Below, piece by piece: positions 1 to 54,966 of a DNA stretch of 64,000 nt (positions within the stretch are counted from its first letter, which is position 1; each line of letters opens with the position of its first letter). The DNA is taken from positions 62,001 through 126,000 of the forward strand of contig JALMLS010000072.1 in the NCBI GenBank assembly GCA_038496445.1. Reading direction: 5' to 3'. The position numbers and the translations under genes were made by a program. This stretch comes from Trichosphaerium sp. ATCC 40318 (taxonomy: Eukaryota; Protista; Tubulinea). The notes under the pieces were generated by a model. That model was not told the origin of the DNA and did no database searches. It saw nothing but the letters and a program-made list of their open reading frames with translations.

Positions 1-3000
1 GTTCTCTAAAGTTTGTTGAAGCAATTTTAAAACTGGTGTCCTGGAGGATCAACAATTAGTATCATGATATTGGAAGGAGGCCGCTCACTTCAGTTGTGCC
101 ATGGAAACCAGCGATGAGGTTGATTTGCTCATTACCAGAAACACGCATCACATAGTTCTTCAAATAATTCATTGTTCTTTCTTGAGCTTCAAGAGTTTCC
201 TTATCAACAGAATCTGTCTGTTTGGAACCTTACAGAATGTAAATACGGAGAAGAGATAAGCGTGGGTGTTGATATTATTTACCTGAGGTTTTAGATTGAA
301 GCACGTTTTTTACAAGGACCTCATGTTGTTTTTTAAACTTATCTTCGAGCGCTGGATTATCAAAGAAAACAATCTTTTCCAATTCAAAGAACGACTCGCT
401 GTCTGTACCCATGAACTTTGAGAACATAACACGAGCTCTCAAGTACTCGTCATGACGTTCCTAATGCGATTTATCAACAAGAGAAGAACCAAAAATAGTT
501 AACTATTGTAAAATACCTTATTTGTTTCGTCACTGTGAAGAGTTGTCCATCTCAACCCTGGATATTTTGCTTTATTTTGTTTCCAATCTCCTTGTTTGAG
601 GAACGCTTGTCCATGAATGCTACTCCAAAAGTTCACACGGCTATTGTCAAGAGCAGGGAATCCTTCTTTTAAATGAGTAGGGGTAACAGAGTGTCCTAAA
701 GTCATTGCTTGAGTAAAAGATTTGCTGATATGATTCAGCTGAAGAATAGCGCTTACCTGTTAGCTTACATACGTATGAAGGCTTTGATACAACAAAAAAC
801 CCCCGCTTTGTATCTTAACTGGACATAGTTGAACCTGTTTAGCATCCAAAGGCTCCAAGTACTCATGAAGACATTCCTGTAGAAAAAGTAAATATTTTGC
901 TAAGATTCGCGTTTAAGTACCGTCCACAGATGTGGTGCTATGCCTCGTATAACAACATTTATCGCTCGGTTGTTAAAATACAAAACAATTGTATTACCAT
1001 AGAAATCAGTTAATACGATCAAATTGGAGAAGAGCCGGAACTCTTTGTTTTGGAATTCTGCAAAATGTAAGAATTATTGATTGATGGTTTTGAGGTACAC
1101 GTACTTCTTAGTCTTCTCTGCAAGTCGTTGAATACGTCTTCCGAGATATCAAGTACTCTTAGCTCATACGCTAAGAACTTTGGGATAGCTTTCACAAGCT
1201 CATATGTAGGAGGGAGTGACTATCAGATAACATTAGATTTTTTTTTAATAAAAATCACTGAACAGGTGCTAGCTATCACTGACGTACAATTTTTTTATCT
1301 TCATTCTCTTTAGTGATTGTATGGACTACTTGGCCTGATATTTCATCGTCTTTTGTTGGCGTATAACATAACATCTTCCACTTTGATGATTTTTTTGATA
1401 AACGAAATACTTGGGGTAACTCAGACTGTTTGTTGTTTGTTGTCTGGACTAAAGTGATACTGTGATCCTGTTTTGTCAAAGGCGGGAAGTATAGCATATC
1501 AGCTTTAGGTAATAGAGATATAATAATATAACCATCAGCACCATAAACTATCTAAACAGATTGTGAATTCACTTGTGTTTTTTTGTGACAAAAATCATGA
1601 AATATGCTAAGTCAACTTACCTTTTCTTCTTTTGTCAAGCGAATACAGAATGACATTTGAACCAAGAAGCTCATTACTTGTTTCACTTGATATTTATCAC
1701 ATGTTGGAAATAGTGTAGAGATACGATAGTACACCTCAGATTCAGTTAATACAGCGCAAGTATTCCTGCTCTTGTTTTTTAGCAGTCTATCAAGATGCTC
1801 TGTAGGAGCTATGAAGGCGCTCATTATACGAGATAGAATAGGTGGGTGCAAACAAATCATGTATGTAGACTACAATAAAGGAATTAAAGTCAGAATTAGA
1901 AGAAAATGATTTCAGAATATGCTAAACCGAAGACGTTCGGAAAAGCCAAGCTCAAAAAAAATACCTCGTCAAACATTATGCTGCCAATAGAATGAAGGTA
2001 GTTTAATGCAGCAACCAGCTCTATTGGAGCCATTTTACATTTTGCAGGTAGCATTTGTACAACTTTTGGACTGCAACAAAAGGTCAGATGACTTCAAAAA
2101 GTCTTTTTTTCGGTTAAAAATACATACATTGGGATGATGTTTCCTTGAAGTTCTTCCTTTTTCACAACTGCCTTCTCAAGAGCGTTTTTTATATTGATGT
2201 ACAGAGTAGGTACTTTTGGATATTGAGCCTTTAAGTACTTTGCTTGCCGCTCCAATATTTTTACAAGACCAGGAATGCCTAATAAGAAACATTAATCAAG
2301 GAGGGAAAAAACAGCAAAGTCAAAGGTTACCTTCTAGACAAAAGGTACAGTAAATTGATGATTCTATAGACTTCAGTTCTGCTTCAGCTATCTTCAAATC
2401 TCCCGCAAAAATATCCAGCTTGGAACCGAACACAAGCACCGAATAAAACTTTGGATCTTGGTCTTGTAGAATCTTATTTAGTGTTTGATACCAATGTTTC
2501 AAATGCTCCTTTTGCTCTGTAACGGATAGCGATAAGTCAACCTGTAAAAATGAGGTTAAGAAAACAAGAAGACATATGAACTAAAGCTTACAACAATGAT
2601 ATATATGGCTAGCTGCTTTGCGAAGAAATACTTGTGTAGCCCTTTGTACTCCATTTGTCCTGCAAAATCCAAAACTGTGAATGACACACCACGGAACCTA
2701 TACTATGGTTATAACTAAACCGACAACCCATCCCAAAAAATACGCACGAAAGAGAAGAGGTATTAAAACCGATAGTTGAATCAGCAGTTATATCTTTTTC
2801 ACGTGTCAATGCTCTAACCAAAGTAGTCTTTCCTAGAATTGGGTGATAAGATTTAGACAAGAAGAAAATCTTGCAGCTAGTTTTTTACCTGATCCTCCAT
2901 GGCCCACAACCAATAATTTAGCTCCTAATTCTTCTACAAACTCATATTCTGCGTGATTTGCTCCTTGGAAAATAGGCGGTTGTGTACGGATGTAGACACC

Positions 3001-4329
3001 CCAATAGATTTTTTCAAATTGGTCTATGGATAGTTTATCCATATTAATGGGTATCACACGTGCACCTGGGAACTTACGTGCTGACATCGTTACTAAGTGA
3101 TATAATTAGATGAAACAGCATAGCCAGAATTGAGACTTAGAGTAGTTGCGTACCTTCATGTAGTGATACCTCAGGTCTACAAAAATCATACACAAATACA
3201 TAATCACGTTCACTCTTTTGTACTTCTTCTGCTGTACCAAGAAAGGTGAACAGACTTTCATATATTGCTTTAGAATATACTTCGAAAATCACAGGTCCTT
3301 TGCATTTTATCCTCTTTTCTCCAGGTTCAGTCATACCACTAGCAGCAAATAGTTGTTGAAGATCAAGGAATTGTGCATTCTGAAAGCTCTTATTGAGCTT
3401 CTGATAGTGTTTAATATCCTCACAATACACGCCAACATCCTTGATTATATCAGGTTTAACAGTACCAGCGAAGTTATGTATAGCAGGTATTTTATCCATA
3501 TTATCAACAAAGAATCCTTGGTTAGGCTTTCCAGCAATACACTTATCATCATCGCCTTTACCTCTTTTACCAGCAACATATTTACCAATAAACTTTGTAC
3601 CATCTGGATAATAATACTCTGCATCATCACCATGAAACTTATCATCTAAAAACCCTCCTTTGTATTTAGTACCATCTGGAAAATAAAACTCTCCACTTCC
3701 TTCAAGTATATTGTCTTTAAAATCGCCAACATACCTTGAACCTTCTGCATAATAAAAAACGCCTTTACCTGTTCTCTGTCCGTCCACAAAGTCGCCAATA
3801 TATTTTGAACCATCCTTCAAAGTTAGCTCTCCTTTGCCTGTTCTTTTACCATCTACATAGCTACCAACATACTTGCTACCATCTGCAAAAAAATACTCAC
3901 CAGTACCATGAAACTCACCATCAGTAAACTCACCACAATATATTCCTCCATTTGGAGAAGTTTCCTCTCCAGTGCCATTGGATTTGTTATTCACAAATTC
4001 GCCTTTGTATACTCTACCATCTGCCCAAGTGTATACTCCAAATCCATGAAACTGAGAATTCAAAAAGCTCCCTTCGTATCTAGCACCAGACGGATAAATT
4101 AGCGTTCCTTTTCCATTTTTTAAACCATTTCTTGGTCCTTTGAATACGCTACCGTTTGGTAGTTGTATATCAGCTAAGAGTGGTAAGACAGTGTACGTAT
4201 AGGTATCACAAGTTATATCCAATTAAGGGCGAGTACAACAAAAAACCAAAACCGAGAATGTTGTGTCAGCAACTTACTGTCATTGGAATCTATTTCGTTT
4301 CCGCTATCATCTTTCTTTGGTTCTGCCAT
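1..4329 (-). CDS. Multi-exon Roco-family protein: MORN repeats - Roc GTPase - COR - PARP-like ADP-ribosyltransferase domain (3' end runs off the window)
   Basis: First exon MAEPKKDDSGNEIDSND (ATG at 4329) splices to MORN repeats (YxGxFxxGxxxGxGxxxxxDG) at about 3560-4170. Roc motifs: KLLVVGHGGSGKTTL, STIG, LDFAGQMEY, VFGSKLD. COR-like motifs: ALNYLHSIGSI, FLVQMSFC. Last exons read FELEKIVFFDNPALEDKF...NLIAGFHGTTEDTSFKIASTNF. Confidence 0.85.
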
Positions 4330-24336: not shown

Positions 24337-25302
24337 TTAAAAAATAAACGGGCTCTCCTTTAAAATCTTGAGTGCTCCAGTCAATTCTTTGATGTGTTGG
24401 TCAGTCATTATATCGTACGATATAGTATTTACACCTGCAATTGCCTTCAAACCTTCATCTGTTATTGAATGGATATAGTGAAGGTAAATGGTGTGTACAC
24501 CTGCCAATGCCTTCAATCCTTTGTCTGTAACAGCTGTATATGATAAGTTAATGTCATGTACACCTGCCAACGCCTTGATACCCTCATCAGTTATTGATTT
24601 ACAACGACTCAAGTTGATAGTATGTACACCTGCCAAAGCTTCAATACCTTGATCTGTTACACATGTATCTGATAAGTTAATCTCATGTACACCTGCCAAC
24701 GCCTTGACACCTTCGTCTGTTATTAATTTACAACGATCCAAGTTGATAGTATGTACACCTGCCAAAGCTTCAATACCTTGATCTGTTACACATGTATCTG
24801 ATAAGTTAATCTCATGTACACCTGCCAACGACTTGATACCCTCGTCTGTTATTAATTTACAACAATCCAAGGTAATAGTGTGTACGCCTGCTAACACCTT
24901 CACAGCTTTATCTGTAACTGTTGTGCCTGATAAGTTAATTTTGTGTACACCTGCTAGTAACATGACACCTTCATCTGTTATTGGCTTGTTTAAACAATGT
25001 TTGATACTGAGTATACCGAAATTCCGCTGTTTACGCAGAAGAGACACCCAACCACAACAGAGGAATGTATTCTTCAGCAAAGGACTTCCTGAAAGGATTT
25101 TCGCTTCGCTTAAGGTTTTGACAACTATTTTGCCATAGCCAATGAACTCGTGGATGATATCACGTAATAAGCGGCATGTTTGAGCTGAACGGAGTGTAAA
25201 TGCCGTCTGTTTGAGAATATGAACTATTATTTCAACTGGAAGCGCTGTAAGCTCCTTTGGGGTATTATCCATGCATTCATTCTTCGTTCTGTTCGTTAAC
25301 AT
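24337..25302 (-). CDS. Intronless F-box/leucine-rich-repeat protein
   Basis: F-box LTALPVEIIVHIL...TCRLLRDI, then about 9 short LRRs of the form LAGVHxINLxxCxxITDEGxKA. Confidence 0.9.
   Translation of the reverse strand: MLTNRTKNECMDNTPKELTALPVEIIVHILKQTAFTLRSAQTCRLLRDIIHEFIGYGKIVVKTLSEAKILSGSPLLKNTFLCCGWVSLLRKQRNFGILSIKHCLNKPITDEGVMLLAGVHKINLSGTTVTDKAVKVLAGVHTITLDCCKLITDEGIKSLAGVHEINLSDTCVTDQGIEALAGVHTINLDRCKLITDEGVKALAGVHEINLSDTCVTDQGIEALAGVHTINLSRCKSITDEGIKALAGVHDINLSYTAVTDKGLKALAGVHTIYLHYIHSITDEGLKAIAGVNTISYDIMTDQHIKELTGALKILKESPFIF
24430..24985 (-). repeat. Coding tandem repeat: alternating 21- and 22-aa LRR units (129-bp period)
   Basis: Near-identical 129-bp copies, e.g. aagttgatagtatgtacacctgccaaagc at 24611 and 24740. 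Confidence 0.9.
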
Positions 25303-44040: not shown

Positions 44041-44613
44041 ATGTCAAAATGTCATCTATTGCATCTACCTTTGGAGCTACATCTTGATATTATTGATTTA
44101 GACCCTACATTTGCCAAATGGCCACTATTATCAAAATATACAGCGACAACAACGAGGTTTGATAGTGACTTGAATAAACATGGAAAATGGATGAAACATA
44201 AGAATGTGCTTGGCTCAAAAAAATCAATGTTGTTAGGCCAAGAACGTTGGAGGCATGGTCAACTTCATGGAGAGTATAAGAGTTGGTATGGAGTACATCA
44301 CAAACATATACAAGATGTGTTGCACAAAGAACAAACTCAAATGAGCTGTCATTGTTATTACAGTAATGGTAAAAAGGAAGGTGAATACAAAGAGTGGCAT
44401 CAAAATGGTGAATTGCGGAGACATTGTTACTATGTTGATGGTAAATTAGAAGGAGAATCTAAGCAGTGGTATAACAGTGGACAAATATATGAGGACTCTA
44501 ATTTTGTATGTGATGAACTAGTAGGAAGTTACAAGCAGTGGAACAACCATGGTTTGTGTACTGTAGACGGTAGTTATGTGGATGGTAAACTAGTAAGATC
44601 CAGAAAAAGGTAA
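44041..44613 (+). CDS. F-box-like motif plus MORN-variant (YwqK-type) repeat protein, intronless
   Basis: LLHLPLELHLDI; repeats such as YxNGKKEGEYKEWHQNG and YVDGKLEGESKQWYNSG. Confidence 0.85.
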   Translation: MSKCHLLHLPLELHLDIIDLDPTFAKWPLLSKYTATTTRFDSDLNKHGKWMKHKNVLGSKKSMLLGQERWRHGQLHGEYKSWYGVHHKHIQDVLHKEQTQMSCHCYYSNGKKEGEYKEWHQNGELRRHCYYVDGKLEGESKQWYNSGQIYEDSNFVCDELVGSYKQWNNHGLCTVDGSYVDGKLVRSRKR

Positions 44614-51735: not shown

Positions 51736-52416
51736 TTATTCTAAATACACCACCTTTTGTTCGTCATTTTCATAGTAAGAATGGTGTTTCAATTGGCCAT
51801 AGATATCCCACTCCTTATGCTGTCCTACTTGCATACCATTATCACAATGACATTCTTCAAGAAGTTGTCCGTTCTTATGCCAAAACTTAATTTCTCCATG
51901 TTGCTCATCATTGACGTAATTAGAATACCGCTGTAATACTCCACTAGCATACCACTTTCTACTAAGTCCATTTAACTTACCATCAACATACTCACACGCT
52001 TCTTGTATTTGACCGTTTTCATACCAACGCTTATACACTCCATGAAGCTCATCGTGTTTCCAACATACCTGAGAAACAGTGTAATGATTCTTATAGTATA
52101 AAGGTGACCATCTAGCTTGGTTTTTGTCGCATTGTTGTGACGATTTCTCTTTAGATTTTTGGACCATCCACTTGCCATGTTTTCTCATTTTACTATCGAA
52201 CCTAGTGGTTATTGCTGCGTGTCTTGATAGGATAGGCCACTTAAAGTATACTTCAAAGTCTAAATCACCGATACAGAGAAGTAACTCAACTGGAAGGTCT
52301 AACAGGCGCGTTTCAGAACTTTTTGGGAAGTTGTAAGTAGTTTTCTACGAAAGCTTGTTATTATATAACTGGATAGTTTCGTAAGGCTTATGGCATACTT
52401 TGGGTTTTGCGTCCAT
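51736..52416 (-). CDS. F-box-like motif plus MORN-variant repeat protein; paralog of 44041..44613 with one 5' intron
   Basis: MDAKPK, then an intron at about 52346-52398, then KTTYNFPKSSETRLLDLPVELLLCIGDLD...KWPILSRHAAITTRFDSKMRKHGKW and MORN-variant repeats. Confidence 0.8.
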
Positions 52417-53165: not shown

Positions 53166-54966
53166 TTACAGAGCGTTTTTGCGCTTTGCTTTGATGACCT
53201 TGATACGTTCAATAGGACTGAATTCAAGCTCTTCTAATACATCTGAGGTGATGTCTCCAGGTTTGATACCTGATTCATTCATCAACGATCCAAGTTCTTG
53301 TGCTCTTGCACTTGAAATACCCAACGTCGCCAATGCTGATTGCCAATTAAATTTGGGAGTAGCGATTGATTGATTTTCTTGAGGTGGACAGAACTCCGAC
53401 TAAATGAACAAATTAAATGTGAAGAAAATAAAATTAAAACAAGACACCTTTGTGTGAGCAACTGAAACATGAGGCTTGTCATTCCATGATTGTTGAGATA
53501 ACAGTGACATATTGTAATTTGATGAAACAGATTCAACATTTAAGGTATCTACATCAATTGGCAAGTGATGATTGTCAACCTAAATACCATGTGAGATAGG
53601 TGTGCTTGTTTTCCAGTACTTACATTGTTGATGTATTCATCTCGATTTTGTTGTATTTTAAAGGCTTCAAGGGTATTTTGAATGATATCTAGATGTTCAG
53701 GATCATCTCCAAACTTGGTGTAATCATGATTGGGATCAACCACAGCTTTTGACAAGTACTTATCTTTTCTGTCTTCTTTTACCTCTGACTTCATTGCTTT
53801 CACAGCATCATCATTTTTATCTTTTGACGTTACTTTATCTGTTGCGGTTACTTTACTGACCGCTTTAAAGTGCTTAAGGATTGTTAGACAAAAAGAAAGA
53901 CAAATAAGATTTCAAAGTACCTTTTGATAATTAGTGAATGTTAACTTTTGTGGCGTTGATTGACCATGTTCATTATTTCCACCTGTGACCAACTGAAAGT
54001 CATGAGATATTGCCAAGTAATCATGTGCTTTATTGGCAAACTCGACATATTTTCCAGGTAATTTTAGTGGTTTGTTTGATGAGAACGAACCAATCCATTT
54101 TCCACTGCCCCAACCAAACAAACAACCTTCATCATCAATCGCAAATGATGTACACACACCAGCGTGTACGGATTTGATGTTATTGAGTCCATGAATGATA
54201 GCCTGGGCATGCTTGTGGTCAGTGCCGAACCCAAGACGCCCATCCTGTTGACTCCAAAAGGAAATACTTGTCCTGACTTGAGGAGAACAAGTACATGACA
54301 ATAACCAACAGCAATATCAGTGGCATCATCAATACTTGGAACACGTGAAATTGTCTTTGGTTTCAAGAATAATGATTTATCTTTTGCTTTATGTTTGGTT
54401 GTTCCCCAAAGAAAGATATGACCTGTTGATGTCATTGCTCCACTTACATAGCGATTAGTTTGAATTTTGTTGACATGATCTAGACTTGTAATACGTTTCG
54501 GTGAGTTTACTTTCTCCTTGTCGAATGAATGGCCCAATCCATCCCATCTGTTGTCTCCCCAAGAGTAGACATGACCTGATTGTGATAACGCCATACTCGC
54601 ATAATAAGCAGAGACTTTCGTGATATTGTTGAGATATGGAACACGTGTTGGTGACGAAACAGGTGACTTGAAGTGGCCCAGACCCAATGACCCATTAAAA
54701 TTGTATCCCCATGAATACATAATACCGTTTGAATCAACTGCAAGGCTATGAAGGGATCCAGCAGCAATACAGACGATATTTAGGAGTGACTTAATTGGTC
54801 TTGCGATAGGACTCGTATTTTCGTCTGTGTTACCCAATTGGCGGCAATAGTTTTGTCCCCACGTGTAAACAAAGCCATCGTCTGCGATTACCATTGAATG
54901 TTTGTAACCAGAGGCCAAACGGTTAATATATTGTAATCTAACCGACGAAGTTTGCGGCTCTGCCAT
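53166..54966 (-). CDS. RCC1-like beta-propeller protein with C-terminal SAM-like domain; one -1 frame break near 54245-54250
   Basis: RCC1 blades (ASGYKHS...VYTWGQNYCRQLG; AAGSLHSLAV...YSWGYNFNGSLGLG). Last exon FNWQSALATLGISSARAQELGSLMNESGIKPGDITSDVLEELEFSPIERIKVIKA. Confidence 0.75.

Follow-up and report, generated by a model that had tools for sequence, protein, structure and literature searches.

A candidate amoeba Roco gene joining MORN repeats, a Roc GTPase and a COR-A-like region to the predicted start of a PARP-type ADP-ribosyltransferase

Roco proteins have been sorted into three groups, namely proteins with the LRR-RocCOR arrangement, proteins in which the same arrangement is joined to a kinase, and DAPK1, and the review that describes these groups mentions neither PARP nor MORN (PMC6337361). 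In bacteria, LRR-Roc(AP-GTPase)-COR proteins carry at least 24 effector domains in a C-terminal slot, those named including TIR, DRHyd, caspase, trypsin, FGS, GT4 and EADs, and these proteins, of which there are many paralogs per genome, are read as NLR-like counter-invader systems (Kaur, Iyer, Burroughs and Aravind 2021, PMC8195603). The supplementary architecture tables of that study contain 581 'COR+TIR' entries and no 'COR+ART', 'COR+PARP' or MORN (PMC8195603). Here, we consider a gene predicted on the minus strand at the left end of a stretch of 64,000 nucleotides of the amoeba Trichosphaerium sp. ATCC 40318 (contig JALMLS010000072.1, positions 62,001 to 126,000; the whole of this 64-kb stretch is hereafter called the window), for which an earlier note, made from the letters of the DNA, had proposed a Roco protein with MORN repeats and a PARP-like ADP-ribosyltransferase domain in place of the kinase. 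The author of that note knew of no described protein of this kind, and our full-text literature searches, in which Roco or Roc-COR was combined with PARP, ADP-ribosyltransferase or MORN, agree, as they returned no paper on the combination.

We think it fairly probable that positions 4329 to 1 of the window carry the front part of one intron-rich amoeba gene, the product of which would begin with a MORN array, continue with a Roc GTPase and a COR-A region and then enter a tail that is the start of a PARP-type ADP-ribosyltransferase. The gene was rebuilt by hand on the minus strand, with splicing predicted from the sequence, and the result was then checked by script. The predicted model, read from 4329 to 1, comprises 17 exons and 3343 coding bases (about 1114 codons) in an unbroken phase and free of stops; its 16 introns are all of the GT-AG type, measure 30-104 bases, and have A or G at position +3 of every donor. 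The short GT-AG introns, together with the 35-39% G+C of the region, are of eukaryotic character. Exon 17 is still open at the left edge of the window and the gene therefore continues leftwards, the visible model representing its front four-fifths. All the strings quoted in the earlier note were found on the minus strand where it had placed them, with FELEKIVFFDNPALEDKF in exon 15 (460-283), and the splicing that it had proposed between the MORN repeats, the Roc GTPase, the COR-like region and the distal exons was recovered in this independent 17-exon model, again with unbroken phase and no stop. The predicted exons, and one candidate intron that is in doubt, are the following.

Exon 1, 4278..4329, minus strand: start ATG at 4329-4327, the first ATG of the open frame, with 17 codons and 1 base; donor gtaagt.
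Exon 2, 3154..4173, minus strand: about 8 MORN repeats, then about 125 residues without family match.
Exon 3, 2889..3092, minus strand: stretch preceding Roc, whose end holds the first half of the P-loop (GHGGS and a split G codon).
Exon 4, 2744..2832, minus strand: remaining half of the P-loop (KTT), with the Thr of switch I (ADSTIGF).
Exon 5, 2592..2702, minus strand: G3/switch II, DFAGQ.
Exon 6, 2331..2541, minus strand: G4-like GSKLD and the end of Roc.
Exon 7, 2128..2278, minus strand: linker from Roc to COR, consistent in phase and without family match.
Exon 8, 1965..2070, minus strand: predicted COR-A helix (ELVAALNYLHSIGSIM).
Exon 9, 1621..1869, minus strand: predicted COR-A, second conserved helix (VKQVMSFLVQMSFCIRL).
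Exon 10, 1288..1551, minus strand: presumed COR-B region, open, in phase and without family match.
Exon 11, 1105..1219, minus strand: part of the spliced model.
Exon 12, 998..1057, minus strand: part of the spliced model.
Exon 13, 769..899, minus strand: last exon before the doubtful 13/14 junction.
Candidate mini-intron 13, 739..768, minus strand: 30 bases, in frame, containing TAA.
Exon 14, 517..738, minus strand: 74 codons between COR and the tail, without family match.
Exon 15, 283..460, minus strand: first block of the PARP-entry motif (LEKIVFFDNPALEDKF).
Exon 16, 89..228, minus strand: ends in NLIAGFHGTTE, with the candidate His of the H-Y-E triad.
Exon 17, 1..40, minus strand: DTSFKIASTNFRE, cut by the edge of the window.

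MORN repeats (PF02493) were recognised as tandem 23-residue units of the form YxGxWxxGxxxGxG. Exon 2, searched as a single exon like all the others, matches Pfam MORN PF02493 over 7 stretches with an E-value of 1.9e-37 and 125 bits, for a cut-off of 22.5, about 8 repeats being counted by eye, and the predicted product is a MORN-repeat protein. Over the same exon, the GC skew of the plus strand is strongly negative (to -0.48) across positions 3400-4000 of the window, which we ascribe to the coding (minus) strand being rich in G at its Gly and Asp codons.

Behind the MORN exon, the motifs of a GTPase were found in order, namely G1 (GHGGSGKT), the Thr of switch I, G3 (DFAGQ) and a G4-like GSKLD. 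Intron 3 (2888-2833, minus strand, 56 bases) cuts the P-loop within a Gly codon (GHGGSG/KTT), so that the full G1 motif is contained in no single open reading frame (ORF). In Pfam, the ORF piece of exon 4 gave a weak match to the Arf family (E 0.076) and exon 5 was assigned first to Roc (PF08477), with an E-value of 5e-4 as against 0.087 for Ras. Since the Roc domain is divided among four exons, its score does not reach the gathering score. Using an alignment of 13 Roco proteins (A2) as reference in hhalign, exon 5 was matched with P 1.7e-8 and exon 6 with P 0.037, the latter at columns 74-105, which hold the region of consensus VVGTKxD. In the PDB, the matches to exon 5 were small GTPases in 28 cases out of 28 (Arl6, Arf, the Roc of LRRK2), and at the equivalent position. 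A Roc-type Ras-like GTPase is present, and the Pfam value for MORN (1.9e-37) and the hhalign value for Roc (1.7e-8), together with the unbroken phase of the model, bear out the claim that both stand in one spliced frame.

Further along the same alignment, exon 8 was placed at columns 195-226 (EL..mL..ftd.GLLm; P 0.007, E 0.0079) and exon 9 at columns 289-319 (lWpel...L.ym..fgLcc.L; P 0.049, E 0.041). Exons 5, 6, 8 and 9 are collinear on A2, with exons 8 and 9 falling on two conserved helices of COR-A, and we consider that there is a moderate case for a COR-A-like region directly behind the GTPase; as Roc and COR-A are paired, we take the product to be a Roco protein. COR-B was not identified by the exon-level family searches. 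Exon 10, where we presume it to lie, has a positive codon score in a leave-one-out test, and another in-phase donor would set the end of this exon at 1330. In all, about 300 residues without family match, presumed to represent COR-B and a linker, would separate COR-A from the tail.

The catalytic domain of PARPs (PARP1, PARP10/14/15) is entered by a beta strand that fits the pattern [ILV]xx[ILV]xx[ILVF]xNxxLxxx[FY], followed by a second block, [LF]HG[ST], which contains the His of the catalytic triad and is followed about 10 residues on by I...[GN]F. Both blocks, as defined here, are present in this order in exons 15-17: exon 15 carries the NP.L...F block LEKIVFFDNPALEDKF, and exons 16 and 17 carry NLIAGFHGTTE and then DTSFKIASTNFRE, with intron 16 dividing FHGT from I...NF (FHGTTE/DTSFKIASTNF). 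For a sequence with the gene's amino-acid composition, the first block has a probability of 6e-6 per position and the second one of 9e-7, and the chance of finding both in order within a 250-residue tail is about 1e-7, a rough, post hoc figure that gives an order of magnitude. In the six-frame translation of the 64-kb window the first block occurs a single time, at exon 15, for an expectation of 0.8, and the weight of the argument is therefore carried by the pairing and the position of the blocks and not by either of them alone. No exon after COR, within the visible part of the gene, was matched to a kinase in Pfam. The last three visible exons would open a PARP-type (H-Y-E) domain at the place where LRRK2-type Rocos have their kinase, and we regard it as likely, from these motifs, that the tail is the start of such an ADP-ribosyltransferase.

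The coding character of the distal exons was considered separately. With a stop probability of 0.071 per random codon in this region, the open stretches of 74, 59 and 46 codons in exons 14, 15 and 16 have chance probabilities of 0.004, 0.013 and 0.033, respectively. A codon-usage log-likelihood trained on exons 1-13 gave in-frame scores of +9.4 for exon 14, +18.5 for exon 15 and +19.1 for exon 16, whereas the same exons read out of frame scored between -25 and -50, and introns were negative in nearly all frames. The distal exons are thus coding, share both the phase and the codon usage of the upstream gene, and lie just 30-56 bases apart from one another and from exon 13; it is unlikely that they belong to a separate downstream gene.

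Several points nevertheless weigh against a single gene ending in a PARP-type domain, and one of them is the junction between exons 13 and 14. This junction requires the removal of a 30-base intron (739-768, minus strand, gtaagctaacaggtaagcgctattcttcag), which is in frame, contains a TAA (763-761) and has at its start a gtaagc that is doubled 12 bases apart, whereas the other 15 introns measure 41-104 bases. Other GT-AG pairings for the junction, read by eye in the sequence, either reach a stop or need an atypical gtt donor. Should the 30 bases (768-739) be retained, which we consider improbable, the copy would be broken or shorter than modelled, with translation stopping at the TAA to give a MORN-Roc-COR product of about 920 residues, and the PARP-like exons would either stay untranslated, be in decay, or have a translation of their own that starts from the ATG at 705. 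Such a retention would account for the exceptional shortness of this intron and for the in-frame stop within it, but exons 14-16 keep their strong in-frame codon usage, removal of the 30 bases leaves them in phase with the exons upstream, and the donor gtaagc and the acceptor cttcag are good sites. Moreover, intron 4, whose 41 bases are not a multiple of three, has to be spliced out to keep the GTPase in frame, which shows that the gene does have very short introns; the spliced junction is kept in the model.

The other points concern similarity to known domains. Pfam COR-A gave no match on single exons and the exon-level support for COR is modest (E 0.008 and 0.04); the COR-like region of the earlier note is supported by the collinear match of exons 8 and 9 to the COR-A helices. 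Exons 14-16, of a tail for which about 40% of the PARP domain would be present in the window, had, when searched singly, no PARP or ADP-ribosyltransferase match in Pfam, NCBIfam, PDB (phmmer) or Atlas, and the Atlas look-alikes for exons 14 and 15 provided no usable match. The spacer from the first motif block to the second measures about 47 residues, as against about 10-20 in macro-type PARPs. Of the triad, only the position of the His falls inside the window; its Tyr and its Glu would lie beyond position 1, as would the NAD-binding loop and the end of the domain. Finally, no homologue of the gene was reached by library, homologous-protein, metagenome or genome searches with exon-sized queries. 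The PARP-entry pattern pointed out in the earlier note is correct as a motif, with its two blocks in order, but is joined by no profile or sequence match on single exons; its proposal of a PARP in place of the kinase is likely for this copy, with PARP-like motifs in a slot that has no kinase match and one triad residue inside the window. A Pfam check of the predicted domains, which the note had also suggested, was run exon by exon and matched MORN and Roc, leaving COR-A and PARP without a match.

These observations could also mean that the tail is not an ADP-ribosyltransferase, FHGT and NP.L...F having arisen by chance or convergence, and that a different, undescribed C-terminal domain starts with exons 14-17. 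The exon-level searches, all blank for ADP-ribosyltransferase or PARP, the unusually long spacer between the blocks and the visibility of one triad residue out of three would be in keeping with this, but the joint chance of the ordered blocks is about 1e-7 and they lie after COR, in what is the effector slot of Roco proteins (PMC6337361, PMC8195603), and we hold this alternative to be unlikely.

Relatives of the gene were sought with individual exons. A search of a representative library with the 361-residue MORN exon returned 64,453 matches, dominated by generic MORN proteins; among the best 150 of these, P0051 was the only one to touch a Roc exon, and Roc or PARP motifs were found in none. 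Using the Roc-COR of P0051 as query, we collected 15 distant Rocos, and PF00644 was present in none of the 15. In the homologous-protein search, the ORF of exon 9 had no match and the exon 2 linker that follows the MORN repeats had no relative, these exon-sized queries being poorly suited to full-length kin. No relative was obtained when metagenomes were scanned with exon 15 and exon 6, or genomes with exon 15. Four ORFs of the window, looked up by exact sequence, were not on record.

Within the 64-kb window, no paralog of the Roco gene was found by tblastn. Two ORFs at 44041-44610 (plus strand) and 51739-52188 (minus strand) encode MORN_2 variant repeats (Pfam 7e-6 and 6e-13), and tblastn revealed no similarity between them and the exons of the Roco gene. 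Two other repeat proteins were observed in the window: an ORF of 321 residues at 24340-25302 (minus strand) encodes an F-box-like domain (Pfam 5e-4) with LRR_6 repeats behind it (Pfam 2.5e-29), and an ORF of 300 residues at 54067-54966 (minus strand) encodes RCC1-like repeats (Pfam WD40_RLD 1.4e-47, RCC1 3.7e-31).

MORN repeats are known to bind membranes and lipids, as in junctophilins and plant PIPKs, and the array of this gene would provide the protein with a front end for binding membranes, lipids or a ligand. If the protein works as other Rocos do, its C-terminal enzyme would be gated by the binding and hydrolysis of GTP together with COR-mediated dimerisation, and the C-terminal domain, probably a PARP-type ADP-ribosyltransferase, would use NAD+. 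An architecture of this kind could serve ordinary signalling, with the MORN array anchoring the protein to membranes or phosphoinositides and Roc-COR regulating the ADP-ribosylation of trafficking or cytoskeletal targets, and we take this as a serious possibility, if short of a probable one. The lipid binding of MORN repeats is consistent with it, and nothing in the window suggests a link to pathogens. Dictyostelium Rocos and LRRK2, furthermore, act in chemotaxis, cytokinesis and vesicle traffic (PMC6337361); by contrast, bacterial Roc-COR proteins with swappable effectors have been assigned to conflict systems (PMC8195603).

On the precedent of these bacterial proteins (PMC8195603), the gene may have the NLR-like immune-receptor role suggested in the earlier note. 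More broadly, amoebae could possess a large family of Rocos working as NLR-like intracellular receptors, in which variable MORN or other repeats would sense an invader or a damaged membrane, Roc-COR would oligomerise, and the PARP-type domain would consume NAD+ or ADP-ribosylate host or invader targets; we put this forward tentatively and regard it as rather doubtful. If it were true, the family would parallel in eukaryotes the Roc-COR conflict systems of bacteria, and its effector would be one that is not recorded there. Roco research centres on LRRK2 and its kinase, and a natural Roc-COR switch driving another enzyme would test the switch as a general-purpose regulator; such a family would also connect eukaryotic Rocos with the bacterial Roc-COR conflict systems and their swappable effectors. 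This copy alone adds little, as the edge of the window truncates its effector domain and one of its splice junctions is doubtful.

When compared with the mono-ADP-ribosyltransferase domain of the PARP10/14/15 type (PF00644), the tail has the first two conserved blocks in the same order and with the same wording, and differs in that its exons have no significant profile match, its spacer is long and the remainder lies outside the window. The protist Rocos recovered from EukProt and ENA (P0051, P0153, P0154, P0159 and P0162) all have Roc-COR, several with TIR_2 and others with a kinase. P0051 carries 19 MORN repeats ahead of its Roc-COR, and its tail resembles, by eye, the start of a TIR domain. 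About 200 residues are inserted between the P-loop and DFAGQ in several protist Roc-COR proteins. All of these proteins are distant from the present gene, their similarity to it being confined to about 30 residues around DFAGQ (39-54% identity), and none of the five has PF00644 or an FHGT-type motif after COR. As protist Rocos carry TIR_2, a kinase or MORN, swapping of the sensor and of the effector on a Roc-COR core does occur in eukaryotes.

The bacterial Roc-COR conflict proteins follow the same logic, with a repeat sensor, a Roc-COR switch and a swappable effector, but they are prokaryotic and their sensors are LRR (PMC8195603). With LRRK2 and the Dictyostelium Rocos, the gene shares a Roc followed directly by COR-A, predicted here, within a large protein of several domains that has repeats at its N-terminus and a slot for a C-terminal enzyme (PMC6337361). 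By contrast, its repeats are MORN and not LRR, ankyrin or armadillo, and PARP-like motifs, with no visible kinase exon, open the slot after COR that is occupied by the kinase in LRRK2-type Rocos. The three Roco groups do not cover this layout (PMC6337361), and the gene probably encodes a Roco with an unrecorded pair of sensor and effector, the effector half being as predicted from its motifs.

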